A stretch of 64,000 nt of DNA from Caecitellus pseudoparvulus (Eukaryota > Protista > Bigyra: Bicosoecida): positions 310,001 through 374,000 of the forward strand of contig CBFFRQ010000089.1 in assembly GCA_965644315.1 (NCBI GenBank), given 5' to 3'. Positions 1 through 18,000 of the stretch are shown one piece after another. Both the position numbers and the translations under genes were made by a program. Every line of letters starts with the position of its first letter. The stretch's first letter is position 1. The notes below the pieces were generated by a model. It searched no databases. It saw only the letters and a list, made by a program, of their open reading frames with translations, and was not told where the DNA came from.

Positions 1-3000
1 TGAGGGGGGAGCTGACCTTGGGCCGCGCTGTAGAGACAGGTGACGCCAGAGCCGCCGGCTCGTGGGGGGCCGAGGTATCCGCTTTTCCTGCGGAATCCTT
101 CTGCGGTTTGTGCTTCGGTTCCCTTGCGGGAGGTTCAGGTGCTACAGATGTGTCTGGCAGCGACACCCGCACTGCACTTGCCGGGAGGGCTGCTGCTCGT
201 CGAGGGGGTGGGGAGCCCACAGACTCGAACTCCTCGTCTTTCTGCTGTTGCTTCTCCTTTTCCTTCGGCTGTTGGTCGTGCTGCTGCTGTGGGGGCGGCA
301 AATCCTTTGCCGCCTCTCGTGCCTGGTGAGGTTGGGCAGGGGGTGGTGTCTTTCGTGCCGGCACTGCTGCCAGACGGGGAGGGCGAGGGGGCGTTTGCCG
401 GCGCGGACGCCGCACAGCAGCAGTTGCTTGCTCAGGCTGTGGCACAGGGGGGCGGTCCTGCACTCCTCCTCCCTCTGAGGGGCTGGAGCGGGGGGGCGGT
501 GCTTGGTGCAGCGGGGGGGGTGCCACGCGGGCCGGGGGGGGTGTCAGACTCGGTTTGGCACGCTCCTGCCGTTGGGCGACACTGCCCGGCGCGGGACTTG
601 CTCTCTTCCCTGTGCTGGCCAGTGGAGACCTGTGCTGCTGAGGCTGGGTCTGAGGCTGAGGCTGAGGCTGGGGCTGGGTCTGAGGCTGAGGCTGAGGCTG
701 AGGCTGAGGCTGAGGCTGAGGCTGGGTCTGTGCCTTCGGCTTGGGCTGGGGCTGTGCCTTGGACCGACTTGAGTCCGCCTCGCTGGCCTTGCTGGAGGTC
801 GCGGCGGCTGGTGATGGAACTTGTCGACGGGGCGGCGAGAGGGGGGCGGGGGCCAAGTGGCCGCTGGACCGCGATCGGCGCAGGGAGCCTGTCCCGGGTC
901 GGCGTTTGGGTTGCCCCCACTCATCCATGTCGTCCACGTCACTGTCGTCCGAGCTGGATGACGTTGACTCGGCTGCCTGCACGGCGTGGGGCACAAAGGC
1001 AGGCTGTGTCCCAGGACTGGACGACCTCAGATCGTGCTGGTTCAGCTGCGAGAAACGCCGCGAGGGCGTCAGCCCAGCCCGTTCAGGGGCCGGTGGTTCC
1101 TTGCCAGTTGTCTGTGGCTGCGTGCTCGATGGAAGGTAAGCAGGAGAAGCCTGCGCGTCAGACTTGCCAGCAAGTGGCCGGGACACGTCAGGGTCCTGCT
1201 GCGAATGCGATGCCCTCTTGGTCGCAGGCTTGATAAGCCCCGCCAGGGGTGCCTGTGCCGTGGGCTGTCTGCTCTGGGCAGGCGAGGCACTGCGCTGCGC
1301 GGCGGGGGAGGCTGCCCTGCCCTTGCTACTGCCGATGGAGTTGGATGACGGGAAACGCACTAGCACAGGCATGTCGGCCTCCTCCTCCACGGAAGGCGTC
1401 ACCTTGACGGGTGTGGAGCGCTGTCGGGGCAAGTGGGGGCTGCTGGCCCTGCGCTGGAGGGGCTGCGGGGGGGACAGTGCCGATCCTCTGGAGCTGTGCC
1501 GCAAGGTGCCTGGCTGCTGCGCCAGTAACGGGCTCGCTGCAGTGTGTGTTCGGGGTGGTGGCGTTCGTGCGCTGTCCTGTGCTTTTGGTTTTGGCGCAGG
1601 TGGCGGCGATCTGGAATCGCGCGCACTCGAAATTATTGGGCCTGGTTGGGCTTTCGCCAATGGCTTCGGTGCGGGTTTGGCTGCGCTCGACGAAAAGTGG
1701 TGCTGCGGTGCCGTGGAGCGTTCTTGTATGTCTTGCTGCCGAGCAGGGCTGTGCTCACGCTGCGGAGGCACGGCGTGCACCACAGTCACAGGGCTGCTGC
1801 TGTGCCCTGATGTTGCTGCTCGGGGTGGCTTCCCAGTAGAAGGTGAGGGTGCTCCTTTACCGCTGGTTGCAGTTCCTTCAAATGGATCAGGTCCTTCATG
1901 GGTGCCGCGTTTCGCTGTCTGCTGTTGGGCAGGCTTGGTGGCCGGTTCGCCTTGGGCCACCTGGAAACTACGTGACGAACGAGATGACGGGGAGCGCTTC
2001 GGCATGCCCGCTACAGCCGCTTGGCGCCGGCCTGAGCCAATGGGGTTCCGGTGCAGCGCACGGGGGCTCTGCTTGTGTTGTCCACTGGGAGTCGACTTGC
2101 CACCTCGGCCCGGCCCGGACTTGGAAGCGCGGTACTGATCCAGTGACTGAGCACGGGAGGAGGGACGGGGAGCACCAATCGTAGCACGCGAGCCCTTGGG
2201 GCTCTTGGGGTCCTCGTGGGACGGAGGCAGCGTCCGGGCAAACTTCCGGTTCCGCTTCGCCCTGTGCTCTCGCACACACCGAATGCTGTCCAGGCAGCCG
2301 CAGTGGTAGAAGCAGCAGCAGCACAGGACGAGCACGACGAGGCAGATGAGGGCTATGCCAGCAATGAGGGTGCCAGGCGTCTCCTCTTCCGCACTGGGAG
2401 GTAGCACCACCCCTGCTGTGGGGGGCGGCGAGCTGCCTGGGGAGGGGCTAGGCGAGGGCACCAACGCTGCAGCCTGCGCAGCCAACTCAGCATCGAAGAT
2501 AAAGGGCACCCTTGCACCTGGGGTGTCTGGGTGGAAAGCGGTGTAGAAGATCGCGTACTGCCCCGCGCTGGACAGCCTCTGAGGCCGGTGGCCCACTTCC
2601 CGGTTCGCAGACACCGTGACTGCGTGCAGCGGCACCCACTCTTCGTCGGCAGTGAAGGTAAAGATACTCGACGCGGTGTCGTCTGTGGAGGCAATGAGTG
2701 CAAACACGTCCCCATTGGCAACTGCCATGCTCTGCACGCTCCACGCAGCCGAGAACTCCCCGCCGTGTGGGCGGGGAGTCAGACTGGCCATGCGCAGCAC
2801 TGGCTCGGCAGTCGGGTCGAACACCCACAGGGAGTCTTCCAGCGCGAGTGCTTCGCTCCGCCAAGCAAAGAGCACTTCGCTGCCTGCCCGCTTGACAGCG
2901 GCACGGGGAGACCCCATGGGGCTTGCTTCAGTCAGCGCCCCGCGCAGGACGGTGGAGGTGCCGGCTTCAATGTCGTGTGCAACGGCAAGCGCCGTTCCTG

Positions 3001-6000
3001 CACCGTCAGTGAAGAGGAACAGCACTGCCGACCCAACTACAAGCACACCGTGGACGTCTGTTGCTGTGGCATACGAGGGCACCGCGTCTGACACTGGTGC
3101 CACGGTCCACGCTCCAGTCGTGGACCCCGGTCTGGCAACATACAACGCAGATGAGCCGCCTGACGAGGCAGCGAAGTACACACTTTCCGCGCCAGTGCTT
3201 GACCTGTACACATCAGCGTGGGTCGGGTGAGAGCTGCCTGCACCTGGAACAACATCTGCGACCTGCACAAGGCCCGCCGCTTGCCCGCCTGTGATGGGCA
3301 CAAAGTGCAGCTCTGTGCCGTTGCCGGTGTCCGCGACGACGTACAGACCATCACCAGACGCAGCCAGTATGTGGGTGGCTGCATCTGCCGCTTGGAGTGA
3401 CCGAAGTCTGCGTGTAGACGTGCTGGCCAAATCCGCAACTTCCCACACGCCATGCTCGGGCGCGAAGCAGTGCAGTGACGGCCCGCTTGCCTCGTCTGCC
3501 GTGAAGCACGCCGTGCGGGCGTCCAGCAGGGTGAACTGCCGAGGGTTCGAGCTGGCAGTGCCTGTCACAATGTCTGCCATCAGTGCTGAGCTGCCATCTG
3601 CCCGGAGAAGGAACGGCTCCCGCCCAGTAAGAGGCGCTGAGCCGTCCCCAAGGATGACAGTGCTTCCACCACCCCCCTCAGGCCGCCCCACCTGAACAGC
3701 AGCCGTCACTCGCTGAAACACCTGGTCGTCAGTTGTCACCACCATTGCTGCGATGGGCGTCACGGAAGGCGTCGCTGTCGGGGAAGGTGTCGACCCAAGG
3801 GAAGGTGAGGCCGAAGGGGACGCCAGAATCGCAGGAGAGCGTGTTGGGGATGCAGATGCTGCCGAGACTGGCTGCACAGCCGGAGAGCTAGCAGCCGAGG
3901 CGCTGGGCGCGGGCTCCGCGGTGTCGAGGACAGACACAGTGACAGCCTGCGAAATCGCCACTGGAGGGGAGCCATTGTCCTGTCCGAGAAGCGTCAAGGT
4001 GTATGCTGCAGTGCTCTCGAAGTCAAGCTCAGCCGTTGTCATGAGCTGCCACGAATTGTGGGAAACCAACTGCAGCACAAAAGGAGCCACGACGGGCGCC
4101 GCGATTAACGTGACTGTGTCATTCTCGGGGTCCACGGCCATTACACTGCCCAGGGCGGTGCCGACAGGGGCACTCTCCAACACACTGAAAGGCGCCAGCC
4201 CAACGAAAGCTGGTCCTTCGTTGACATTCACCACCTGCACAATGATGCTGAAGCGCGCCACAACTGCGCCGGCCCCGGGTGAGCCAGTATCCACGAGCTC
4301 GACGCCGAGTACGTGGGCAGTGGCAGCCTCCGCATCCAGAGCAATCAAGTTCGTGAGTCGCCACAGCTCATTTGAGACGCTGGAAATCGAGAACGCCATA
4401 CTGGGCTCTTGCAGGCGGAGCAAACCCCATTCCCCCGCGTTTGGGTCCGCTGTCTCAATGTCCAGCGCCAATGTGCCTGGTGGGGCGTTCTCGTAGACAT
4501 TTCCAAGCACAGGTGCGGACGCGTTGGACACACCCACACGGTAGGGTGCCTCGTTCACGGGCACCAGCGCCACGGTCACATTGACAAACGCCACCTGCCG
4601 TGAAGCGCTGTCATCCTCCACGCGCAAGACAAGGGGCAGCAGTGCCGGCAGTGACCCAGAGAACACTCGCAGGTTCCGCATTGCCCATGCTTGGGAGCTG
4701 CCGCTGCCACCCGCTTGAAGGAGCTCAAAGTCTGAGGCATAGTCACCGAGCACCCTCACACTGCTCACTCCATCCCCATCATCGTCTGCAAATTGCACGT
4801 TGCCGACGAGGGAGCCGATGCCCGCACCCTCCAGCACGCTCAATGCCGGAGTGCCGACCAGGTAAGGGGCAGCTGGCACATCAGTGACAGACACATGTAA
4901 AACCAAAGTGGCTGTATGCCCCGCCCCATCCACAGCCTGCACTGTGACCTTCCGAGTCCCAATGACGGCAAACCCCGCACTTGCGTTGGCGTGCTGGAGC
5001 GGCCGGGCTGTGAGAAGTTCCCAGGCTGTGGGTGTTCCGCTGACCGAGAAGTCACCTGCCCACGCCGGTGTGACAGTCACAGACATACCACTAGTGGTGG
5101 TCACATCGTCCGGGTCCACGAGGGCGAAGGAGCCAACAAGGGTGCCAGCTGGGCTTGCCTCCGCCACGGTCAGTGTGCCGGGGTCAGCCGCAAACACGGG
5201 GGCTTCCGCTTCATCTGTGATGGACAAGCTGTGCGAAAATCGAACAGCTGACGCGCTGATGGAGCCGCCTGGAAGGATGTCTTGCACGTCAAAGGACAGC
5301 TCCCAGGCGGGCACAGCAAGCGCCTCAAAGTCCAGGGGGGTCCCAACCACTGGAGTAAACTGCACGAAGAATGTGTTTCCAGACACGCGCTGCGCAGACA
5401 GTGAACTGCCCCACACAGAGGAATTCACAGAAATAGCGGGAGCCGCCAGCTGTGCCATGCCCCCGTCTTCGTCGAGCACACTGACATCAGCCCGGGCACC
5501 TCCAGCTTGCACAGCGACAGGCTGCCGAGTTTCGGCACCACGAATTGCTTCAGTCAGCGTCAGCGCGGAGACAGGGAAGGCCAACTGCGGTGGGTCATTC
5601 ACATCGGTCAAATGGACTGCGACGTTAATGGTGTGGTTCAATCCTGCTGCATCAGCGGCTGTCACGCGCACAGTGGCTGTGTTTGCCCCCTGCTCGAAGT
5701 TCTGCAGGTCGGCCGGCAAGGCACTGGTTGTCACAAGGTCGTAGCCCTGGAATTCGAAGCCTGCTGTGGAGCAAGTGACAGTAACAATGTCCCCCGCATC
5801 CGGGTCGACAACTGCCACTGTTCCGACGTAAACACCAGGGACAAGCGGCGAGCCAGCTGGAACCTCGGGCAAGCTCCACGGCGCAGCCACTCCAGCGACG
5901 CTTGGGGCTTCGTTTGCATCCTGCACGGCAATAGAAATGGCCCCTGTGCGGCTGCGACCCGTGGAGTCTTCCATGTACACGAGCAGGTCAATTGACGGCT

Positions 6001-9000
6001 CAGACTCGTGGTCCAATGGCCGCGCCGAGCGCAGAATCCACACGTCGGCTGGACTGTTGCTAGGCAGGATCGTGAAGGCTGCAGCCCAGCTGCCCTGGAG
6101 AGACACTTCAGGCACTATGTCAGCATCGGGGTCCTTGATGAAGAACCTTCCGACTTCTGTGTTCCCGGGCAGATTCTCCAGCACGTCAAAGTGGATGCTC
6201 TCCACTCGCTGCTCAGTGGTCGTGCTAGCACCTGAGTCGTAGCCAATGGGCAGCATGACTGGCGCCTTCTTAACATCGGTCACTGTCACTTCAACGGTGA
6301 CATCTGGGAGGCCCACTGCTTGCCCTGCTTCCCCGTTCCAAACTGACACGTTTCGGACCACCGACACCGAGAAGAACGGCGTTCGCTCAAAGTTGGGCTT
6401 TCGCGAGGCAACTCGCATGATGAAGTCGCCTGTGGTTGGGTCTTGAGTCATGTTGAACAGGGCTGGCACGCCGGCTGCATCTGGTGGTGACTGGCTTGCA
6501 ATGGCAGCATCGACCATGGTGTCTCCTTCGGGGTCGTTGATGTTGGCCTGCGGGAATCGAGCGACCTCCGTGCCAAGAGGGGAGTTCTCTTGCAATGCCA
6601 CTTGAATCAGCGTCGGGGTGGAGCTGGTCGGCGCCTCATTCACGTTGCGCAGGACGATTTCCAGCTGCAAATCAAATACCTCCACAGAGGCATCTCCCGT
6701 CACAGGATCACAGCCGCCAGGACCTTGGTACGCGTCTGTGACCTTCAACGGGATGTGTATCGTGTAGCTTTCCAACACGGTGGCGGGCGGGTCGTTGCGA
6801 GCTCCGGCAATGCCTTCAAAGTCCAGGCCATCCGTCAGGATGCCAGGGGTCCCAGCGGGAGCTGGTCTGAAGAGGGAGCTGACAGCGAAGTCAAGCTCAG
6901 GCCAGGGCACGGCTCCGTTGCTCTGCACTGTGCCAGTTGCAGAGTTAAAGTGGTGGCACAGGATCGAGTAGGGGTTCCCGTCAGCATCTGTCACTGTTGC
7001 TGTGAAGTTCAGCGGCCGCTCTTCAAGTACTGTTACTGGGGCCAGGACAGCAGAGCCAGCGTGCTCGTTGGGGTCATCCAACACTGTCAGGTTGAAGTGC
7101 AGTGTTTGATTTCTGGCAAAGGAGCCAGAGCTGTCGTCCACTACCAGCACGATTTGGACGCGAGCGCTCGCTCTAGATCCGGGCTGATGCTCTAGCAAGC
7201 TGTCTTCACCCGCTGCCTGCAGCCGCGCCGCCAGAGCCTCGAAGTCCACAGAGGCGCTGAGCTCGATGTCCAGAGAGGCAGACCCTGCCTGGACGTTCGC
7301 ATCAGGGAACACCACCTGCAGGGGCAGCACGCTGGAGTCGAGCACCTCTGACCCTGGGCTGTTCAGGGCAGGCAACGAGCTGAAAAAGCGGAAGTGGCCC
7401 GCTTCACGGTTTGTGTTCCCGGCCACATAATCACCATCCGACAAGGTCACCGTGCCGACCACAAACCCTGTTGTTTGCACGCCTTCCGTCAAGTCGATGT
7501 TCGGGTTTGACAGCACCAGAGGCGACAGAGGTAGGCTTCGACGGGCGATCATCACAGTGAAGGGCGCCAGAAGGTCTGCCCAAGTTCCGTTGCCGTGGTC
7601 CACTGCAACAGCCAGCTCCACTTCCGCCGCAGGCGCGTCTCGAACACACTCAATCAAACTGCTGTCGGCCGCACATGCGGCGCACTGCGGCAAGGGGCCT
7701 CCTGACGTTGCCTGGCACTCTGCTCCAGGCGCTGCCACCAAAATGCTGGCCAGATCAGCTGATCTAAACGCCACAGCGTACTCTGCCTGCCCTTCGTGCA
7801 CCACGGACTCGGGGAGGGTGACAAGGAACGGGACCAGGGAGGTGTTCAGCGGTGCCCCGCTGACACCTCCTTCGTTCAATGCATCCGTCGTCGCCGTCAC
7901 TTGGACCTGGCCTGGAGCGTGCATCCCAGTGGCAGCGGCAGCGGTCATGATGTCCTCGTCCGCCACACGCAGGACAGCAAGACTGTAGTTCTGGCCATCT
8001 GTGATGGCGAGAGGGAGTGCTGGCATGAATGCCATGCTTGTGACTGGGTCATTGGTGTCCTGGAGTACGAAGGACAGCGAAGCAGGTGTTGCACCTGCTC
8101 GGGGGCTTCCAGCGCGCCCACTGTTGGACGCGATGGCAAGGTCGAGGGACACGTCTGAGCGATCAGAGGCGGTGTCCCTCCCGGCGGCGCGCGCCACAGC
8201 CTCAAAGTCCAAGCTTGCCAAGGCGCTCACGGTAAAATTGGCTCCCCCAAAGCTAACTTCAATGGCAGAGACAGACAATGGGAGGAGGGAAGCATTCACG
8301 GCACCTTGAGCGAGCCCGCCCTCATTCAGCGCCGCATTGGAGGTGGACACCAAGACTGCGCCGCCCAGGTCTGCTTCTGTGCCGGGCATGAAGTCGCCAT
8401 CTTGCACGGCGACTACGACAACCGGATCGGGTGTTGTGTTTTCCTGAAACGTTCCGCCACCGCTGGCTACCACTGCCGAGGTAGGTTCCTCTGCATCCAG
8501 CACGGTGAAGTCTAACGTTCTGGGCGCTTGAAGGCGGAAGCCAATCCCCCCCCCGCCGCCGTACACAGTGATGTTCACCGAAATGCCTGGGCGTGGGCTT
8601 GTCCCAGGCATCCCAAGAGTCTGGGCTAGTGCCTCATAGCTGATTTGTGTGCCCACTTGGACGTCAAAGTCGGCCTGCCCCTCACTGGCAGTGTGAGGCA
8701 CGACGGTGAGGTTCACTGGGTTGTCCGCAAGTGGCTGGAGGGCCCCTCCCCCCTCGTTGAGGTCCGCGAGGGATGCCAACGCGGTCAGCAAAATCAGATC
8801 TGGGGCAGGAGATGCCCCGGCGACAAAGTCTGGGTCCACCACCGTGACTCGTGTGATGAATGAAGGGAAGGACCCCTCTTCCAGCACGTTGGGACTCAGC
8901 TGAGCAAAGCTGACGGAGGTAGTTTGCTCCTCGACAGGCAGCAGGGTGATGTTGAACGTCGTCGCTGTGGTGCCATCCACTGTCACGTTCACAAACTGCC

Positions 9001-11092
9001 CGGAGCCGTCGTCCACGGCAATGCGGACTTCAATGTGCAGTGGGGAGCCGTCTAGAACCTGCATGGCTGCCGCGACAGTCTCATAGTCAGGGTTCGTCAG
9101 CTGCAGAGTAAACAGGGCCTCGCCGCCCTGTACACTTGCAGCATCTAGCTGCAGCGCCAATGGGAAAATGCTGGTGTCCACGCGGCCATTGCTCATGACG
9201 CTTGGGTGGCTCGCGAACACGCGTGTGGCGCCCACTGACGAGGAGTCGCCATCGACGAAATCTGCGTCAGCCACACGAAGCTGCGCAGTGTATGCGCCCG
9301 AGCTGCTCTCATCAACGGACCCATCCAGGAGACTGCCGGCTAGCTGCAACTCGGCAACAGTGATGGGTTGGTTTGCGGGGGGAAGGCCGTACACGACGTG
9401 CACGACACCACTGTCCTGCTCAAACCGAGACAGAATGGACAAGTCGTCGAAGCCGTCCTCGTTCAAGTCGCTGTTGGTGTTGATCTCGAAGCCATTGAAG
9501 GAAGCGTCGGCACTGTGGGATACTTCCATGCCCCGGGATATGTCTGCCGCCAAGTACCCTCCGAGCGCCAGCTCCCCTGACGCGGAGGCTGCCGTGCGCA
9601 GGCCAGCTGCTCCGAACAGGACCGCCACGTAGGATTCGAAATTGTCCTCGAACACCTGGTCTGTGAACGAGGTGCCGTCCTGCGGGCGCAGGCGGCCATT
9701 CAGAAGCGCTGTCTCTGCTCCCGCCGGAGGGGAGGCCCTGGCCATGGTGGCTGCCAAGGCGATGTCCATGGCGCCGTCCGAGTTGATGTCCCCTGCAGCG
9801 GTGAGGGCAAAGCCCAGCCAGGACCGGTCCATGGCATCATCAGGTGTCAAGAACATCCCATTCGACACGTTACTTGCGATGGCCGTGGTGGCTGCGAAGG
9901 ATGCAGGCCAGGCGGGCCGTCCCCACAACACGTACACGCGGCCCTGGCGCGAATCCGCCGCCACGTCGCCGACGAGGATGTCACTCAACCCGTCGCCGTC
10001 CACGTCCCCACCGCCGCACGCTGCCCCAAAGGAAGTCCCCGACATTGATCCGGAAGTCAGGTTGAAAGCCGCGCTGCCGTTCGCGCTGGAGATGGGGATG
10101 GTGCCCTGCCCAATGTACGCAGCAAGTGGTGCGCCGCCCAGCACGACGTACACATTGTCCTGGCCACTGTTGAACACGGCAATGTCGTCCGCCCCATCTC
10201 CATTCACGTCCCCCACGTTCACCAGACTGGCACTTCCGCTCAGCACCTCGTACCGAGCATGTGTAAGGCTGCTCGTCGGCGTCGCGGAACCGCCCATGGC
10301 GGGAAAAGAGCACAGCACGACCAGAGCCGGGGGCACGGTGTCCTCCAGCCCTGCTACACCTGTGCTGCCGTCTGCGCAAAACGACCCTGCGACGGCAGTA
10401 GCGCCGAAATCTGCGCCTGCTTCGCTGCCCGTCACTTGAGCGACGAGGCCAGGCGCATCAAAAACGGACCACAGCTGGTCCTGACCCAAGGTTGGGAACC
10501 CTGCCGTAGAGGAGTCGCCGTGGAAAAACAACAAAGCTCCGCTTGAAGTGAGGCCGGGAGCACCAATGATGAGCTCTGGCGCCGGCGTCGAGTGAGTGTG
10601 CGCCGAGGTGAGGGCGGCTCCGAAGCGCTCATCCGCCCCCGTGCCGCAGAGACGGTGCACATTGCTATCGTCGCCCTCCAAGCGCAGGGCTAGCGGCCCC
10701 ATGGCAACCATGATGCAACCGGCATTTGCGTTGGGGGAGACGTCATGCAGGGGTCTGCCAACCGCCAGGTGAGTGTTGGTGAAGCCAGGCCAGGTTGTCG
10801 AGGCGAGGCCTGCCAGAGGCGATCTCGGAGTCTGCTCATCAACCTCCATGGCCTGGCCATCATCGCTGTCGACACTGTCCAAGTCCACGATCCCAGCGTG
10901 CGCTGACAGGCTGCGCTGCATGACGGCTTGCAGCGTGCGCAGATTGCGTGGCTGAGGGGGGTCCCGTGCGGAAATTGACACACTGCGCCGTGTCGCAACG
11001 TCGACCGACCCCGCCACGGCGTAGCTGGACAGGCCCCAGTGTGCAAGCACGGCCAAGAAAATGCGGCAAAGCGATGCGCGTTGGGATGCCAT
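1..11092 (-). CDS. Giant type I membrane adhesion protein: FG-GAP (integrin-alpha-like) repeats + cadherin-like repeats + ELWxxDGT-like propeller + TM + long cytoplasmic tail; 3' end outside window
   Basis: Hand translation from ATG at 11092 gives MASQRASLCRIFLAVLAHWGLSSYAVAG (signal peptide). It continues with ERFGAAL...ELIIGAPG, GDVNGDGADDIAV, GDVDGDGLSDILVG, GDINSDGAMDIAL and DLNEDGFDDLSI (FG-GAP Ca-binding loops, ~9400-10650). Repeated ENxPxGTxV / DPD / LDFE / DVNDPP / NVNEAP cadherin motifs follow (~3900-9300), then TM GIALICLVVLVLCCCCFY (~2305-2370). The track lists no minus-strand ORF in this register below 11483, consistent with the frame staying open to the window edge. Confidence 0.9.
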   Translation of the reverse strand, partial: MASQRASLCRIFLAVLAHWGLSSYAVAGSVDVATRRSVSISARDPPQPRNLRTLQAVMQRSLSAHAGIVDLDSVDSDDGQAMEVDEQTPRSPLAGLASTTWPGFTNTHLAVGRPLHDVSPNANAGCIMVAMGPLALRLEGDDSNVHRLCGTGADERFGAALTSAHTHSTPAPELIIGAPGLTSSGALLFFHGDSSTAGFPTLGQDQLWSVFDAPGLVAQVTGSEAGADFGATAVAGSFCADGSTGVAGLEDTVPPALVVLCSFPAMGGSATPTSSLTHARYEVLSGSASLVNVGDVNGDGADDIAVFNSGQDNVYVVLGGAPLAAYIGQGTIPISSANGSAAFNLTSGSMSGTSFGAACGGGDVDGDGLSDILVGDVAADSRQGRVYVLWGRPAWPASFAATTAIASNVSNGMFLTPDDAMDRSWLGFALTAAGDINSDGAMDIALAATMARASPPAGAETALLNGRLRPQDGTSFTDQVFEDNFESYVAVLFGAAGLRTAASASGELALGGYLAADISRGMEVSHSADASFNGFEINTNSDLNEDGFDDLSILSRFEQDSGVVHVVYGLPPANQPITVAELQLAGSLLDGSVDESSSGAYTAQLRVADADFVDGDSSSVGATRVFASHPSVMSNGRVDTSIFPLALQLDAASVQGGEALFTLQLTNPDYETVAAAMQVLDGSPLHIEVRIAVDDGSGQFVNVTVDGTTATTFNITLLPVEEQTTSVSFAQLSPNVLEEGSFPSFITRVTVVDPDFVAGASPAPDLILLTALASLADLNEGGGALQPLADNPVNLTVVPHTASEGQADFDVQVGTQISYEALAQTLGMPGTSPRPGISVNITVYGGGGGIGFRLQAPRTLDFTVLDAEEPTSAVVASGGGTFQENTTPDPVVVVAVQDGDFMPGTEADLGGAVLVSTSNAALNEGGLAQGAVNASLLPLSVSAIEVSFGGANFTVSALASLDFEAVARAAGRDTASDRSDVSLDLAIASNSGRAGSPRAGATPASLSFVLQDTNDPVTSMAFMPALPLAITDGQNYSLAVLRVADEDIMTAAAATGMHAPGQVQVTATTDALNEGGVSGAPLNTSLVPFLVTLPESVVHEGQAEYAVAFRSADLASILVAAPGAECQATSGGPLPQCAACAADSSLIECVRDAPAAEVELAVAVDHGNGTWADLLAPFTVMIARRSLPLSPLVLSNPNIDLTEGVQTTGFVVGTVTLSDGDYVAGNTNREAGHFRFFSSLPALNSPGSEVLDSSVLPLQVVFPDANVQAGSASLDIELSASVDFEALAARLQAAGEDSLLEHQPGSRASARVQIVLVVDDSSGSFARNQTLHFNLTVLDDPNEHAGSAVLAPVTVLEERPLNFTATVTDADGNPYSILCHHFNSATGTVQSNGAVPWPELDFAVSSLFRPAPAGTPGILTDGLDFEGIAGARNDPPATVLESYTIHIPLKVTDAYQGPGGCDPVTGDASVEVFDLQLEIVLRNVNEAPTSSTPTLIQVALQENSPLGTEVARFPQANINDPEGDTMVDAAIASQSPPDAAGVPALFNMTQDPTTGDFIMRVASRKPNFERTPFFSVSVVRNVSVWNGEAGQAVGLPDVTVEVTVTDVKKAPVMLPIGYDSGASTTTEQRVESIHFDVLENLPGNTEVGRFFIKDPDADIVPEVSLQGSWAAAFTILPSNSPADVWILRSARPLDHESEPSIDLLVYMEDSTGRSRTGAISIAVQDANEAPSVAGVAAPWSLPEVPAGSPLVPGVYVGTVAVVDPDAGDIVTVTCSTAGFEFQGYDLVTTSALPADLQNFEQGANTATVRVTAADAAGLNHTINVAVHLTDVNDPPQLAFPVSALTLTEAIRGAETRQPVAVQAGGARADVSVLDEDGGMAQLAAPAISVNSSVWGSSLSAQRVSGNTFFVQFTPVVGTPLDFEALAVPAWELSFDVQDILPGGSISASAVRFSHSLSITDEAEAPVFAADPGTLTVAEASPAGTLVGSFALVDPDDVTTTSGMSVTVTPAWAGDFSVSGTPTAWELLTARPLQHANASAGFAVIGTRKVTVQAVDGAGHTATLVLHVSVTDVPAAPYLVGTPALSVLEGAGIGSLVGNVQFADDDGDGVSSVRVLGDYASDFELLQAGGSGSSQAWAMRNLRVFSGSLPALLPLVLRVEDDSASRQVAFVNVTVALVPVNEAPYRVGVSNASAPVLGNVYENAPPGTLALDIETADPNAGEWGLLRLQEPSMAFSISSVSNELWRLTNLIALDAEAATAHVLGVELVDTGSPGAGAVVARFSIIVQVVNVNEGPAFVGLAPFSVLESAPVGTALGSVMAVDPENDTVTLIAAPVVAPFVLQLVSHNSWQLMTTAELDFESTAAYTLTLLGQDNGSPPVAISQAVTVSVLDTAEPAPSASAASSPAVQPVSAASASPTRSPAILASPSASPSLGSTPSPTATPSVTPIAAMVVTTDDQVFQRVTAAVQVGRPEGGGGSTVILGDGSAPLTGREPFLLRADGSSALMADIVTGTASSNPRQFTLLDARTACFTADEASGPSLHCFAPEHGVWEVADLASTSTRRLRSLQAADAATHILAASGDGLYVVADTGNGTELHFVPITGGQAAGLVQVADVVPGAGSSHPTHADVYRSSTGAESVYFAASSGGSSALYVARPGSTTGAWTVAPVSDAVPSYATATDVHGVLVVGSAVLFLFTDGAGTALAVAHDIEAGTSTVLRGALTEASPMGSPRAAVKRAGSEVLFAWRSEALALEDSLWVFDPTAEPVLRMASLTPRPHGGEFSAAWSVQSMAVANGDVFALIASTDDTASSIFTFTADEEWVPLHAVTVSANREVGHRPQRLSSAGQYAIFYTAFHPDTPGARVPFIFDAELAAQAAALVPSPSPSPGSSPPPTAGVVLPPSAEEETPGTLIAGIALICLVVLVLCCCCFYHCGCLDSIRCVREHRAKRNRKFARTLPPSHEDPKSPKGSRATIGAPRPSSRAQSLDQYRASKSGPGRGGKSTPSGQHKQSPRALHRNPIGSGRRQAAVAGMPKRSPSSRSSRSFQVAQGEPATKPAQQQTAKRGTHEGPDPFEGTATSGKGAPSPSTGKPPRAATSGHSSSPVTVVHAVPPQREHSPARQQDIQERSTAPQHHFSSSAAKPAPKPLAKAQPGPIISSARDSRSPPPAPKPKAQDSARTPPPRTHTAASPLLAQQPGTLRHSSRGSALSPPQPLQRRASSPHLPRQRSTPVKVTPSVEEEADMPVLVRFPSSNSIGSSKGRAASPAAQRSASPAQSRQPTAQAPLAGLIKPATKRASHSQQDPDVSRPLAGKSDAQASPAYLPSSTQPQTTGKEPPAPERAGLTPSRRFSQLNQHDLRSSSPGTQPAFVPHAVQAAESTSSSSDDSDVDDMDEWGQPKRRPGTGSLRRSRSSGHLAPAPLSPPRRQVPSPAAATSSKASEADSSRSKAQPQPKPKAQTQPQPQPQPQPQPQPQTQPQPQPQPQTQPQQHRSPLASTGKRASPAPGSVAQRQERAKPSLTPPPARVAPPPLHQAPPPRSSPSEGGGVQDRPPVPQPEQATAAVRRPRRQTPPRPPRLAAVPARKTPPPAQPHQAREAAKDLPPPQQQHDQQPKEKEKQQQKDEEFESVGSPPPRRAAALPASAVRVSLPDTSVAPEPPAREPKHKPQKDSAGKADTSAPHEPAALASPVSTARPKVSSPL
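637..729. repeat. (GGCTGA)n hexanucleotide microsatellite encoding a poly-(Gln-Pro) tract in the cytoplasmic tail of the giant adhesion protein
   Basis: Tandem gaggct/ggctga units are directly visible; the minus coding frame reads QPQPQPQP with occasional QT. Confidence 0.9.
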
Positions 11093-12090
11093 GCTGCTCG
11101 GTTCGTGCCGTCTGGCTGGCCTTGGGCGGGGATCCAAAAGGTGGCAAGGACGCCGGCTGAGGGAGGCGCCCAGTCTGCCTGACACAGAAGGTGGGTCACG
11201 ATTTACCTGCAAAAGGGTGCAGAGAAGCGTTGATGGCGTGCTGGGATGCCTTGGGGGCGCGCTGGGCAGAGTCTGCAGCCTCAGTCAGCGCACGCGGCAA
11301 GTGGCACCGGCGAGGCCGCGTGCAGAAACGCTTGGGCTTGCACAGATACTGTACGCACCCTCCTGCTCCCTTGTGATGGGCGAGGCAGCGAAAGGCCTTC
11401 GAAAACAGGTTCACTGAACGGTTCACAGGCAGCCGTGCTGCGACTCGCGAGCAGAGGGCTCTTCGAGCACGCTGGCGGCCTTTTATGTGTCCTTTCTTGT
11501 GTGTGGTGCAGCCAGCACTGGTGACAAGCCGGGTGTGCGATGGAAACAAGACAAGTACGCTGCAGTCTGCAGCTTCGGGAGAGCATGCGAAAAATATTCC
11601 TGTTCCTCTGCTTTGCAAGTGGTGTCGCACCTGCTGACGGGGGGCGTCGAGTCTCGTGCAAGCGGGAAACATCGCCACCGTCGTAGAAAACTGGCCGCGT
11701 CGCTGACCCCAGCACTCTGCGGGTGACCGGCCAAATTCCAGCGCAAAAAGGTAGCTGAAGATCGAACTTCAAGACATTCAGCCATCCCTCACCTTGCCTG
11801 GTAGAGTGAACACGGAGGCGCCCGCTGTTTGGTGGGAACTGCTGCTCGTCGCAGCGACGCCTGTGTCTGAGCCGGCCGGAACCACTCCATAACAGCGTCT
11901 TTCTGGTGCTGTCTGGGATCCGTAGACAACCTTAACATCAGTATCTATCGTCATTCCGTCGGATCCTCCAGATCCTTCTCTTTGTTGACCCAAGCAGGGG
12001 TCCGTTCAGCAGGCGTTTCGGACGCGTTTCGGCCAACGCCTCACCTGCAGCTTCACTGTGCTGGCCTTGCCGGCCAGTTTCTTGGGCAGA

Positions 12091-15000
12091 ATGTCCAGTG
12101 GTGTGGGTGCTAGTGTGAGCTTGACAGTGGATGGGAGCGGCGCAGCTCTTCCGAGTGCTTCTGGGGACAATCCTCCGAGCGCAGCCAGCCGAGCGCCTGC
12201 GCCGGTCTTGAGGCCACCCTTCATCGACACAAGCCCACCACAGGGTGCACCTGGGTCGCGGCGCATCACTCTGCCCAGCACTGCGCCTGCGTTTCCTCAA
12301 CATACCAAGAGTGACCTTGAGGCGCTGCAAGGCGCTGCAGAGCTTGCAGCCAGTGTCGGGCGGGACGTCAGCCTTGGCCGTCCGGGAGCTAAGCTGCCGT
12401 CGGTGGACCTGAGGTCAGTAGACTTGCGGTCAATGGACTGGACCCGCGAGGACAGCCGTGACATGTCGACGCGGGATTTGTACACACCTACAGCGGCGGG
12501 CTACATCCGGCGTCGCCGGGCGAGCACTGGGCAGTGGAGTGACATGCAGAGCCCGCGCCATGGGAGCACGTCGACGACTGGACCCGACACTGCACCTGCC
12601 AGCTTGTCCCAGGTGGCGAGACGGGTGTCACATGCACTGCGGGCGACCAGGTCGCCTCGTCACGGGTCTTCTCGCAAACCGCGTCGCATGAGCGCCTTTG
12701 ATCGCACGGTGGATGTGCTCGCGGGGGGTGCGCCTAACAGCCAGCTCGTGCAGGAGTACGCGGCCGCGCTGCACCGCAAGCGGCCCCGCCAGCGGTGGTC
12801 CCAGCTGGAATCCGCTGACCCACATGCAGCGCAGGTCATGAGCGGGGTGTATCGAGTGGCGCTGTCAGAAGCCAAGGCGGGGGGTGTCGTCACAGAGGCG
12901 GGGCGGCGCGAACACCGCAGACTGCAGCGGGCGTGCCACCTGCTGCCGCCAGCGCCCAGAAAACATGCGGAGGGGCGTGAACCTGTGCCATACGTGCTGC
13001 AAGGCGACCTGCGGTTTTATTCCGTGCAGTTTCTGCTGCGGAGGCACCGCCTGCGCAGGGCTCCGCGCGTTCGTGCCTGCCTATCACTGTGGTTCGCAGT
13101 GGCTCGCACCTGCACTGAGGACGGCCGAGCAGTGCTGGGCGTGGGGCGGGAAACGTACCTGAGCATCTTTACCACGCTGTGGCCGGTGTTGAACCCGAGC
13201 GGCTCCACTGCAGAGGGCCTTGTGCTTGCGGAATTAGACTGGGAGCGCGACGTGGCCCTGGGCAGGGGACGCGGCCCAACAAGCACGTCCGGCAGCGCCT
13301 CTCCCACCAGACGCCGAGACATCTCCAAGGATTCTGACAGCGGTGTCTCCGGCGTGAGCAACTTGTTCTTGAAGGAGCGCGTGTTCGCTGACACCATGTT
13401 CGAGCTGGCAGACGTGTGGACAGAGACCACTGCGGAGAAGGAGTACTGCCAATTCCTTCTCACCATGCTGCGGCACTGGGTGGACAGCGTGGGCCGAAGC
13501 GAGTTGCCCACGCTGCTGCAGCTGGCCAGCGACACATCGGAGCCAAGCGCAGTCGACGCAGTAGCTGCGCGTGATGTGCTGAGCGGCCTCGGGCAGTGGG
13601 TGTGGGCAGCCGGCCCCCAACCCGGAACACACTGGCGGCACAGCGCGTTGCCAGAAGTCCTAGCGGGGCTGCCTGAGGGCTTGCCCGAGGGTGGCGATGG
13701 CGATGGCCAAGCACTGGATCGAGTCGGGGCGTACGACTCGGACAGCGATGCGCTGCTCAGCACTGACGAGAGTGACAGCGGCGTGAGTTCGGCGGGCTCG
13801 CAGTCCAGTTCAGGCAGCTTTATCCCTGGGTGGGAGGGCGAGGGGGGGGGCGAGGAGGGGCATCTGGCTCACCTGCTGGAGTGGGCTGCTCGCAAGGGTT
13901 ACGCGCACTCCCACTCCTCATTCCTGCACCGCCACCGCAGTGTCAGCCCTGGGACAGTGGTGTCACTGCCCACCCATGCCCCCACCATCGGCCGCGCGAC
14001 GCCGCCTTCCGACGCAAGCGAAGTGGCCCAGCGCAGTGCTTCGCAGCAGGCGGCACGGGGGCGCCCCCACCTGCGCCTGCACCTGGCCGCTGACGACAGC
14101 TCAGACGCTGCCGATGCCTCACGCACGCCGCTGGCAGGCCCCTTCCTGCGGGCTATGGACACCGCCGTCACCCGCCTGCTGCAAGGCAAGGGCGCAGACC
14201 ACGCCGCCAAACACCACCCACACCCTAAGCAACTGGTCACGGCTGGTGGGCAGGCGAGAGGTGTGGGGGCGACAATGGGGGGTGCACCGCACGCTGTGGG
14301 GCAGCTGCTGTTGCCCACGGCCCGAGGGTCGCATCCTGGGCTGCCGTTGGCTGGGTCAGTGGGTGGCAATTACCGTGCGGTGCACGGGCAGTGGGTGGGC
14401 GGCAGCACCTCTGGCAGTGTTCCACACCGTGTTCCGATTTCCACCTCGGGAGGGGATGGATTCAGCAGCGGCGTCCTGGCCGCTTCCCTGCATTCAGCCC
14501 TGACGAGCGGCGTGTGGCAGGTCGCAGGCGTCGACGGCACCGCCCTCGCCACACGGGCGTGGGACGGCGAGTTGTTGCTGGCCATGGCTGAGGTGGAGGC
14601 CCGCAGGCGCGAACGAGCGGCGTGGCAGCGCGCAGTGAGTCAGCGCGTGGTGGCGATTTGGAAGGAAATGGTGCTGCGCACTCGAGCGCGGCGCGCACAC
14701 CGTGCCTTGCTGCGCACATCCTCCAAGGCGCGGCGCAAGGAGCGTGTGCGGCGCAAGTTCATGAAGGCTCTGCAGAGCGTCGCGGCGGAGCTAAAGGATA
14801 CTCACGCCTCACGCCTGATGGGCGTGCTGGACACTTTGCCCAGCGTGGAGACGAGCGCCGCTCAGACAGGCGCTAAGGAGTCTGGTGAAGGGAAGGTGCC
14901 ACCTGCACCGCCCGGCAGGCACGCTGGCCAGCCCCCCCGACACACCCGCAGTCGCACTGCCCCTGCACTGCCGTCTGCGCTGCGCACGTCGCACAGCACC

Positions 15001-18000
15001 ACCCTGCGGAAGGAAGTGTCCTACGCTTCAGACGTGGAGGACGGTGAGGACACCGCGGATGCTGAAGTGCAGCCTGCGTCCGCGTCAGTCGGAACAGAGT
15101 ACGACCCTGAGCACGGCGCGGTGATCCATGGGCCCACTGGGAACATCTTCATTCCGCCGCTTCCCTCGGACACACATGCGCTGTTTGCCGCCTTCCGCGA
15201 CGAAGAAGGGTACAGCCACGAGATGGCACTGTGCGACCACTTGCTGCTGTCCGGCCTCGGCCACCGAGCCATAGCGCAGGCGCCGCCTCCGCCCGCCCGA
15301 ACCACGCCACGAAGCACCTCTGTGAGTGTGGCAGAGGCGCCCATGCCGTCGGCGGGCCACCGCCACACGCCCTCCATGGCCAGTGTGGGTTTGCCAGCTG
15401 TCAGTCTCGCTGTGCACCGCGGAGGCAGCATGCAATTCGACGCGCTGGGGCGCATGTCCTCCCTCTCCAGCGCCTCGTCAGAAGACGGAACACAGCGCCA
15501 CGCGGAACACCCCATGCGCCCTGCCGCCACTCCACAGCCGTCGGAACCAACTGCAGCGTCTGATGCGCAGGCGATGCTGTACGAAGTTGCACTTGCAGTG
15601 GCCAAGCCGGGTGCTGTGGAGGCCTTTCCCAGGCAGCAAAAGCTGCAAGGGGAGGTGGCTCAGGTGCCCAGTCCACCGCCCAGCCGACACCGCTCCCGAG
15701 TCACTTTCAGTGACCGGGCACTGGCAGGTGTTCTGGAGCAGGTGGGCGGGGTAGATGCTGCCGAGCAGCTGCACGCTGTGTCGGGGCTGGAGCAAGCTGC
15801 AGCGGCAAAGGGGGTGAGCAGCATTGTCAACGCCCTGCGAGGCAGCAGCGAGGGGAAGGCGGGTGCAGAGACCGCCACTGCCGCGTTCCTGTCCCGTTTC
15901 ACCGCCATGAAACGCATGGCACAAGACCAGGCTGCCGCCGCGCGCAGCCGCCTCGCGGCAGCCAAGGCCCGCGTCGCAGCGCCAAAGGTTCGCATGTTGC
16001 TGAACGACGACACAGTCATGCGAGCCGCAGCACACCTGCAGTCCAAGGCAGTGCACGGGTTCACCAGTCCGCTGTCGTCCGCTTCAGACAGAGGCAGCCG
16101 GAACGGGCACCATGGCGGCAGCCTGAGCATGGGCGCTGCTGGGTCTAAGTCCCTGCTCAGCACGCCCAGTGCCCTGTCCATGGGGGCAGAGCACGGGGCA
16201 CCACCACCCATGCCGAGCGGGCCCGGCACCATGCGCCCTGTACGTTACGGCGTCGGCGGCCTGGGCTGCACACCCCGTGACTGGGAGTTGCTGGGAGTCA
16301 TGCCGATTCAAATTCCGCACTCTGCCCTGCAGCACGCCGGCCTCGTGCGGGGCGTCGGCTCCAGTCCCTGGGCAGGCAGTGGGGGTGTACACGCGGCAGG
16401 TGTCGTGTTTGCCGAGGCTTTGGCGCTGTGTTCGTCTGCATTTGCGCCGGCAGCACCGGGATCCGCGCTGGGTGGGCTGGTGCAGGCTGGCATGCAGGCG
16501 ACACGTGCGAGGCTTGAGGCAAGCCCTGGCGCGCCGCTGTACGTGGGAGCAGCTTCTGAAGGCTGGGTGTGGGTGGCATGGATGCTGGTGGACCACTTGG
16601 AAGGCGCGCATGTACCCCGTCGCAAAGTGACCACGTCGCAGACTCGACGGGGGTCGCACGCGCCAAGCGCCGCCTCTGCGCCGCCACCCAGCAGCACCCG
16701 AGCCACAGCCCGCACGCCACGCGAGGCAGTCGGGGTGGACGATGAGCCCAGCATGCAGTCGACGGATTTGTCCGCGACGCCGGTCGCGACAGACGACTTG
16801 CAGACCACAAGTTTCTGGCCCCCCACACCGTCCATGCGCCAGCGGTCGTCCTCTGCGACCCCGCGCACTGGCTCGCCCCGCCCCCCCACCAGCCGTGCAG
16901 CCAAGCTGGATGCGTCAGTGGTGGGCACAGTTGACGATCTGGACGCGCTGTCCGAGCGCCGCAGCCGAGTGAACGCCGACGGCACGACATGGAGCAGGGC
17001 TGACGCGGCGGAGGACGCGTCGCGTGAGATTGTTCTGGGTGTGTTCCCGGACCAGCTGACAGCGGCCCTGGCGTTCGACCACGCCGTGCGGGAGCGACGT
17101 GCTCGCCTGGGCATTCCCGCCCCCATTGCTGCATCGCTGCAGGACCAGCTGGGGCGGGATGCGGGAGATGGGCGCAGTGCCGGTGGCGGCGCGGTGGATG
17201 GGCTGAGTGCGTGGGACATCCGGCGCCTGCCGGCACGGTCGCGCCACAACCTGTTCACGAACTTCACCCTGGCGGGCATGTTGCTGAAACCGCCGCCCCA
17301 CCTGCACGCAGAACGGGCGTTTTTCCCGCCGTCGGCCGCACCCCCTCGACTGCACCGGTGGCAGGTGTACACGCACCTAGCACAGCAACGAGCCCTGGCA
17401 GCCGCCACGACCGCAGACGCCGCAGCCAGTGCGGCCCGTAGATTTGGGCTGCAGCACGCACAGTCCACAGCGGCACTGCAGGCTGTGCAGAGTGCCGTGC
17501 AGGCTGGGCAGTTGCATTGCCCCGCAGTGCAAGGCGGCTCAGAGGGGGTGCAGGCATCCATGCAGCGTGCCATGGCAGCTGCAAGTGGCGAAGGCGACTC
17601 GCGTCATGACCACACCGCCAAACACCAGGCGCTGGTGGTGCCCGACTCCATTCCCGTCGGCGCCGGCATCCAATCCCCCCTCCCAGCCCAGCTGACCCAG
17701 CGGGAGGCGGGGTGGGTGGAGGGCGACAACACGCTGCTGCGGTACGGCCTGGCTGCGACGGCGAAAGACGTCGCGGGCATGGACGCTGAAGTGCTGGCCA
17801 CAGCACCACGGCCGGCAGCGAAGGTGGCTGTGGCAGAGGGCCCGCTGCGCGCGTCAGACCTGCTGCACACTCCGCTGCTCATGACGATGATGCGGGCAGA
17901 TCGTGCCCGCAGGCGCAAACGCCTGCATGCGGCACTGCTGAAACGCACGGGCATTCAACTGGTGGAGTCGCCCAGCTTGGAGGAAGAGGAGGGTGGTGCA

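Follow-up and report, generated by a model that had tools for sequence, protein, structure and literature searches.

Integrin-alpha heads and cadherin repeats represent the two main adhesion systems of animals, and their pre-animal history is debated. The locus described here raises the question of whether a protist carries both on one receptor. It lies in Caecitellus pseudoparvulus, at the left end of a 64,000-nt stretch of contig CBFFRQ010000089.1 (here C89, positions 310,001 to 374,000 of the forward strand, assembly GCA_965644315.1), which is referred to as the window. In a first-pass annotation made from the sequence alone, a giant minus-strand frame at this end had been read as a single-pass adhesion receptor with an integrin-like head on a cadherin stalk. 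Our analysis favours, with moderate confidence, a long-reach giant surface receptor of type I, in which an integrin-type Ca2+ propeller is placed atop a cadherin-type rod; by analogy with the animal systems, its role is probably Ca-dependent adhesion or recognition. A single polypeptide of a free-living stramenopile, far from the animals, unites both modules on one transmembrane (TM) helix, which shows that integrin-alpha-type and cadherin modules have recombined freely in protists and offers a testable candidate for prey or surface recognition by a bacterivorous flagellate.

The open frame and its domain order

Direct translation of the minus strand from window position 11092 to position 2 gives 3,697 codons with no stop. 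In-frame stops, which the first-pass annotation had named as evidence against itself, are absent from this register, and the single uninterrupted frame that it had described runs on for 135 codons beyond window position 1 before ending in TAG. The complete protein comprises 3,832 aa and the whole gene occupies C89:309594-321092 on the minus strand, its 3' part having been read from the flanking DNA (L001, C89:305001-315000). The ATG at window position 11092 is the first of the open frame, the 64-66 in-frame codons upstream of it containing no other, and it leads directly into a signal-peptide-like segment. That the gene is missing from the list of open reading frames (ORFs) was confirmed; ORFs running off the window end are not listed there. 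The features of the protein are given below in window coordinates, with the evidence in brackets.

1..11092, minus strand: coding sequence, codons 1-3697 of 3832, with no in-frame stop; a further 405 nt and the TAG lie past window position 1
11012..11092, minus strand: signal-peptide-like N-terminus, residues 1-27, with a putative cleavage-type site AVA/G (reading of the sequence)
9368..10810, minus strand: FG-GAP beta-propeller head, residues ~95-575 (Pfam, AlphaFold2 (AF2) model, Foldseek, VIA, phmmer)
9368..10237, minus strand: blades 4-7 of the head, residues 286-575, carrying the Ca loops (Pfam and confident model)
7064..9367, minus strand: five tandem M modules of ~150 aa, residues 576-1343 (internal repeats, model of M3)
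3893..7063, minus strand: nine extracellular cadherin (EC) repeats of 105-144 aa, residues 1344-2400 (Pfam, iterated hidden Markov model (HMM), motif table)
3713..3892, minus strand: Ser/Pro/Ala/Thr-rich, mucin-like linker, residues 2401-2460 (sequence and composition)
2393..3712, minus strand: ELWxxDGT-repeat (ELW) domain, residues 2461-2900 (NCBIfam TIGR04534, internal repeats)
2276..2371, minus strand: single TM helix (residues 2908-2930) and Cys cluster, followed by a basic stop-transfer stretch (Kyte-Doolittle hydropathy, Cys positions)
2..2281, minus strand: cytoplasmic tail, residues 2938-3697 in the window and to 3832 beyond it (composition bins, motif scan)

From the N- to the C-terminus, the layout would thus be signal peptide, FG-GAP propeller, rod, mucin-like spacer, ELW domain, TM helix with Cys cluster, and tail. 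So long a frame could also be a non-functional or mis-assembled ORF, either a pseudogene or two genes fused in the assembly, and the protein has no match to itself in either protein library searched. Both this absence and that of orthologues may be due to genes that were never predicted, rather than being real. At the local base composition, the computed chance of 3,832 codons without a stop is about 1e-46, the domains follow one another in order from signal peptide to tail, and the gene is placed inside an 895-kb contig with a composition resembling that of its neighbours. Furthermore, AATGCA occurs 56 and 167 nt 3' of the TAG against a background of about 0.14 per kb on each strand (the 64-kb window has 9-10 copies per strand), and these two copies are candidate poly(A) hexamers, which would fit a short 3' untranslated region. 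We therefore regard a non-functional or mis-assembled frame as scarcely credible. The AATGCA pair is located at L001:4430-4541, minus strand, downstream of the stop of the gene.

The FG-GAP head and its relation to integrin alpha

The first-pass annotation had described FG-GAP repeats with Ca loops at the N-terminus, and these are borne out by profile searches. Pfam FG-GAP matches three stretches, with an E-value of 2.4e-12 and a score of 46.9 bits where the cut-off is 22.1, FG-GAP_3 matches with 2.3e-7, and four loops of the form D-x-[ND]-x-D-G-x-x-D start at residues 295, 363, 435 and 542. Blades 1-3 were recognised by eye alone and have no Ca loops. The fold of residues 95-575 was modelled with AF2 on an 18-row alignment of homologous propeller segments, and the model reaches a predicted local distance difference test (pLDDT) value of 70-90 at residues 286-575. 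In a Foldseek search against the PDB, all 50 of the matches listed are integrin alpha (E ~1e-7). VIA-align of the model against 48,161 PDB representatives placed integrin-alpha chains at ranks 1-10 (Z 15.8-19.7), with generic WD40-type propellers at 15.6 or below. The best match is alpha5 (4wjk_A; Z 19.7, root-mean-square deviation 3.6 Å over 214 aligned residues, 27% identity), of which the aligned part, residues 211-452, corresponds to its Ca-binding blades 4-7. By sequence, phmmer against the PDB likewise gave integrin alpha for 33 of 33 head matches, with alpha4 at 1.8e-7. Solved FG-GAP propellers are almost all integrins, and matches from the PDB are biased accordingly. The head is integrin-alpha-like in its Ca-loop blades, both by sequence and by fold.

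Outside the structure database, the nearest relatives of the head in a word search are giant FG-GAP proteins with ~30% identity, most of which have RTX-type Ca-binding repeats; the few named ones are bacterial or archaeal. No close paralogue of the head was found in the genome. The giant bacterial proteins P0015, P0017, P0027 and P0033 combine the FG-GAP and cadherin Pfam domains in one polypeptide and are ~30% identical to the head blades, and P0015 also carries RTX repeats. They differ from the receptor in having serial propellers with interspersed single cadherin-like domains and in lacking a TM helix and a cytoplasmic tail. A bacterial contamination or a recent transfer of the head was considered and not adopted, as the similarity is at the level of the repeats (~30%) and the gene is part of an 895-kb eukaryotic contig.

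The resemblance to integrin alpha extends to the type I single-pass topology and to the Ca loops, which occupy the last four blades as they do in the animal alpha5, alpha4 and alphaV chains. However, the animal proteins have thigh and calf legs, a GFFKR motif and a beta partner, and in the receptor described here, which is about four times longer and has a cadherin-type stalk, legs and GFFKR are missing and no beta partner was detected. No Integrin_A_Ig leg domain (thigh or calf) was matched by Pfam in the protein, PF08441 has no match in the whole genome in a search whose control was uninformative, and integrin beta (PF00362) was not detected in a six-frame search of the genome, which does not prove its absence. 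Because the leg domains and GFFKR are lacking and no integrin beta was detected, the receptor falls outside the integrin-alpha family. The integrin-like head of the first-pass annotation therefore holds in so far as integrin alpha is the closest solved relative, while family membership does not follow from it, and an integrin-alpha head on a cadherin stalk serves as a working analogy.

Related architectures have been described in other protists. Kang et al. reported amoebozoan integrin-alpha homologues of Type I and Type II, which are membrane proteins with a head of FG-GAP and cation motifs, and in four of them an Ig-fold-like or cadherin-like (InterPro superfamily) domain adjoins the head; a typical animal integrin alpha has 700-800 aa (bioRxiv 10.1101/2020.04.29.069435). 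In the same study, Ectocarpus was the only stramenopile in which an integrin homologue was found, and the FG-GAP proteins of Cafeteria and other protists were excluded, as they have no signal peptide or TM helix, or have seven or more TM helices (bioRxiv 10.1101/2020.04.29.069435). By these minimum criteria the receptor would be retained, although it fails to show the classical integrin features (legs, GFFKR, beta partner). In the amoebozoan proteins the cadherin-like or Ig-fold-like domain takes the place of the integrin legs, whereas here there are 14-15 modules with nine Pfam-grade cadherin repeats, an ELW domain and a tail of ~900 aa.

If the protein were a true integrin-alpha orthologue, strongly diverged and paired with a beta-like subunit that escaped detection, this would explain why integrin alpha heads the PDB matches in both sequence and fold searches, with Ca loops in the last four blades, and why signal peptide and single TM helix are present, unlike in the protist proteins excluded by Kang et al. 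(bioRxiv 10.1101/2020.04.29.069435). We consider it very improbable, since Integrin_A_Ig was found neither in the protein nor in the genome, Integrin_beta was not found, GFFKR is missing, the PDB matches carry the bias mentioned above, and the word-search relatives of the head are the mostly RTX-type giant proteins, with bacterial or archaeal names where they are named.

The rod, the membrane anchor and the tail

In the stalk, Pfam Cadherin (PF00028) matches with an E-value of 1.3e-23 (83.6 bits against a cut-off of 28.8); FG-GAP and Cadherin both exceed their Pfam cut-offs. Searched in pieces, residues 1634-1723, 1975-2070 and 2302-2389 are matched, several repeats reaching 1e-9 to 1e-11, and the count of nine repeats is based on the iterated HMM together with the linker motifs. 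A DxD-like motif is present in 9/9 repeats, an LDxE-like motif in 5/9 and a D/N-x-N-E/D-x-P-like end in most of them. The Ca2+-linker motifs of the canonical repeats are largely intact by sequence, and Ca binding is predicted. Among PDB sequences, matches of the canonical repeats include CELSR1 (7.7e-32), many protocadherins, cadherin-23 and FAT4. On this sequence evidence, the receptor is a member of the broadly defined cadherin superfamily.

Between the head and these repeats, five M modules share the motif order E...DxDF...ALNEGG...DFEA...D.NEP and are 21-28% identical to each other. They have no significant match in Pfam, NCBIfam or PDB sequence and profile searches, and the genome contains no paralogue of them. 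When 1.84 billion representatives were searched exhaustively with HMMER, no relative of the M modules was found except for one weak repeat match, P0052, which is also the only match for residues 576-1487 and is limited to residues 1310-1431, where M5 ends and M6 begins, with many weak repeat hits. P0052 itself is a metagenomic, apparently bacterial protein of 6,116 aa with ~37 tandem repeats of ~105 aa, which end in NVNEA-type linkers. A model of M3, built on a single-module alignment of six internal repeats, is a Greek-key sandwich (predicted template modelling score 0.61) whose top matches are protocadherins (Foldseek E 4e-3, VIA Z 7.7). An Atlas shape search with this model gave a mixed result, and a language-model feature search with the M modules returned cadherin clusters exclusively (0.92-0.93), which is of value as a lead. 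In addition, the motif order E, DxD, DFEA and D.NEP parallels that of a cadherin repeat with an insertion of ~40 aa. With moderate confidence, the M modules may be taken as divergent cadherin-derived sandwiches. In the resulting rod of ~14-15 beta-sandwich modules, the five M modules would be followed by an intermediate one and by eight to nine cadherin repeats of the canonical kind. The long cadherin-like run of the first-pass annotation is thus confirmed by HMM for the nine repeats at 1344-2400 and lacks such support at 576-1343, so that about a third of the "cadherin stalk" consists of orphan modules, which the model suggests to be cadherin- or Ig-like.

Several results weigh against a complete propeller on a rod that is cadherin-derived throughout and ends in a second propeller. 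In the head, the pLDDT falls below 50 at residues 95-285, which include blades 1-3, and a closed seven-blade propeller is a model-based suggestion. In the rod, hhalign of the M modules against the canonical repeats was not significant (probability 1%), only one of the five M3 models, with the six internal repeats as input, reached a pLDDT of 71, and Ig domains tie with protocadherins for M3 (VIA Z 7.6), leaving cadherin and Ig folds unseparated. Close to the membrane, the match to TIGR04534 (E 3e-11, 43.2 bits over two stretches) is below the curated whole-protein cut-off of 65 bits.

This membrane-proximal ELW domain had been annotated as a second propeller. It shows three clear internal repeats at residues 2490-2642 and weaker ones besides, and it is probably a beta-propeller; the ELWxxDGT repeats stand, with the sub-threshold score noted above, and the propeller shape of the earlier claim is an expectation. 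A feature search of the ESM Atlas gave sub-threshold hits alone for this domain, a PDB profile search found nothing, and a word search among proteins of 2,033-6,470 aa gave no match.

The remaining parts of the predicted single-pass receptor, namely a signal peptide, one TM helix, a Cys cluster and a disordered-looking tail of at least 760 aa, were all recovered. The N-terminal segment is hydrophobic and reads as a signal peptide. Only residues 2908-2930 are hydrophobic enough to resemble a TM helix (Kyte-Doolittle 3.2); a weaker segment at 2326-2344 (1.91) falls within a cadherin repeat. Cysteines are located at residues 2917, 2924-2927, 2931, 2933 and 2939, a cluster that may be palmitoylated. 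The tail measures ~895 aa in all, 760 of them in the window, and is rich in S, P, Q and R. Scanning for motifs gave 13 PxxP and one (PQ)n run and no GFFKR, NPxY or PPxY, and Pfam found no domain in its 895 aa, the catenin-binding Cadherin_C included. All 26 of the N-X-S/T sequons lie in the ectodomain and none in the tail.

An EC-type module in established cadherin structures is ~4.5 nm long, and Ca2+, abundant in sea water, could stiffen the linkers of the cadherin and M modules, giving a rod about 60-70 nm long. Such a rod would hold the propeller far from the membrane, where it could bind a ligand on prey, on a substrate or on another cell, and the long tail with its PxxP and basic or phospho-type motifs might recruit cytoplasmic partners. 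A more far-reaching version of this explanation, an independent "integrin-cadherin" receptor that works without a beta subunit, with a propeller tip, a cadherin rod lengthened by M1-M5 and a disordered tail coupling to the cytoplasm, is less likely. If it were true, both animal adhesion heads would be combinable parts of a domain repertoire that is much older and more widespread among eukaryotes, and the M module would represent a novel class of domain that derives from cadherin and evolves fast; in any case, the orphan modules form a small structural puzzle.

Among cadherins, the receptor is comparable to long non-classical members (CELSR, protocadherin-15/cadherin-23, FAT) and to those of protists (choanoflagellates, Pythium, Cafeteria), with which it shares the tandem EC rod, the Ca2+-linker motifs and the membrane anchor. 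It differs in its distal tip, an FG-GAP propeller with orphan modules in place of EC1, and in a tail that has neither a catenin-binding nor any other known cytoplasmic domain. Its nearest named relative is a Cafeteria cadherin-domain protein with 24% identity. In known cadherins, the trans interface lies at the membrane-distal EC1. A homophilic cell-cell adhesion of the cadherin type, for example in mating or in the formation of cysts or aggregates, with trans contacts between EC repeats and the propeller as an accessory, would be in line with the canonical repeats and their Ca-linker motifs. It is rather improbable, as the distal end is formed by the propeller and five non-canonical modules and the tail lacks a catenin-binding domain according to Pfam. 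A further point in its favour comes from the related flagellate Cafeteria burkhardae, in which cadherin and other adhesion domains are up-regulated in stationary phase (PMC7852580).

A shared chassis among giant adhesion-type genes

The assembled genome comprises 30.6 Mb in 215 contigs and is eukaryotic, with tandem full-length eukaryotic small-subunit (SSU) rRNA genes. Together with the one TM helix, the FG-GAP head and the animal-type cadherin repeats, this agrees with the eukaryotic single-pass receptor proposed at first. Searches of the genome with Cadherin and FG-GAP gave at least 136 and at least 140 matches, respectively, which are lower bounds and not exhaustive, since the best candidates were scored; for each domain, the matches are spread over some 30 giant open frames with lengths of 2,000-10,000 aa. 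Among these best candidates, no second frame with both FG-GAP and cadherin was found when contigs and frame sizes were cross-matched.

Over its full length, the ELW domain is ~30-31% identical to three giant cadherin ORFs, located on C62 (4,416 aa), on C89 at ~98 kb (4,450 aa) and on C147 (10,046 aa), all of which are matched by TIGR04534 at ~1e-9. The paralogues on C62 and on C89 at ~98 kb contain Pfam Cadherin and Cadherin_4 and no FG-GAP; for that on C147, the genome-wide FG-GAP and head-blade searches gave no FG-GAP match among the best candidates. All three end with the ELW domain, a TM helix and a tail of ~35 aa without a Cys cluster. The receptor therefore combines this shared cadherin-ELW-TM chassis with a tip that differs from theirs and a tail that is much longer. 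Domain shuffling inside a lineage-specific family would account for its origin, because the three paralogues share the cadherin-spacer-ELW-TM chassis and have other tips and ~35-aa tails. The ELW regions of the three paralogues are near-identical to each other, and their near-identical 3' ends suggest a recent duplication or gene conversion. The near-identity covers the C-terminal regions (ELW, TM and tail) at C62 ~179.9-181.1 kb, C147 ~36.2-37.4 kb and C89 ~98.3-99.6 kb.

These relatives also bear on a passive function. As a component of a surface coat or glycocalyx, the protein would be a long glycosylated spacer or part of a protective brush, its head and tail having no specific ligand or signalling role; the 26 N-glycosylation sequons, the mucin-like S/P linker, the low-complexity tail in which Pfam recognises no domain, and the many similarly built giant repeat proteins of the genome are all compatible with it. 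Such a coat would not require what is seen in the head, namely four intact Ca loops and a retained similarity to the ligand-binding integrin blades, and the finding that the head is unique while the chassis is shared suggests that the specificity of the tip has been under selection. We consider a coat function unlikely and prefer the long-reach receptor.

How unusual the architecture is depends on the comparison. It was seen in this one frame of the genome, yet the genome has dozens of giant cadherin or FG-GAP mosaic receptors and related cases are described from amoebozoans and stramenopiles. The stramenopile Pirsonia diadema has 445 "integrin-like" FG-GAP/EGF genes of 360-2,680 aa, some of whose FG-GAP proteins have a signal peptide and a TM helix, and a role in recognition or attachment has been proposed (PMC13524835). 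This is the same kind of lineage-specific FG-GAP expansion in stramenopiles, but paired with EGF and not with cadherin (PMC13524835). The Cafeteria cadherin-domain protein P0002 matches the Caecitellus genome with 30-39% identity, too low for the genome to be that of Cafeteria. The receptor is a real and unusual domain mosaic, and one more variant among the giant adhesion-type receptors of this genome. As giant intronless genes such as this one are missing from public protein sets, surveys of predicted proteomes under-count adhesion genes.

Some further observations concern the assembly and the neighbourhood of the gene. The rDNA array at C81:462535-506238 has a period of ~8.45 kb and contains five full SSU copies, and a much weaker full-length SSU match (451 bits) at C213:27842-29337 may be organellar or foreign. 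At C69:862262-867916, just upstream of a 4,528-aa frame, eight equal-scoring cadherin matches follow each other every ~672 nt in open frames of 245-963 aa; they could be almost identical cadherin units in tandem, interrupted by frame breaks, or the result of a faulty assembly. Two pairs of giant cadherin frames have identical scores, at C20 ~38-39 kb and C68 ~871-873 kb (6,581/6,583 aa) and at C65 ~11-13 kb and C32 ~817-819 kb (4,541/4,708 aa), and may be duplicated loci or uncollapsed haplotypes. Within the window, a 4,050-aa open frame on the plus strand (12058-24210) gave no Pfam match at E<=0.1. It is positioned head-to-head with the receptor gene across ~1 kb and, as a second giant gene, may share a promoter region with it.

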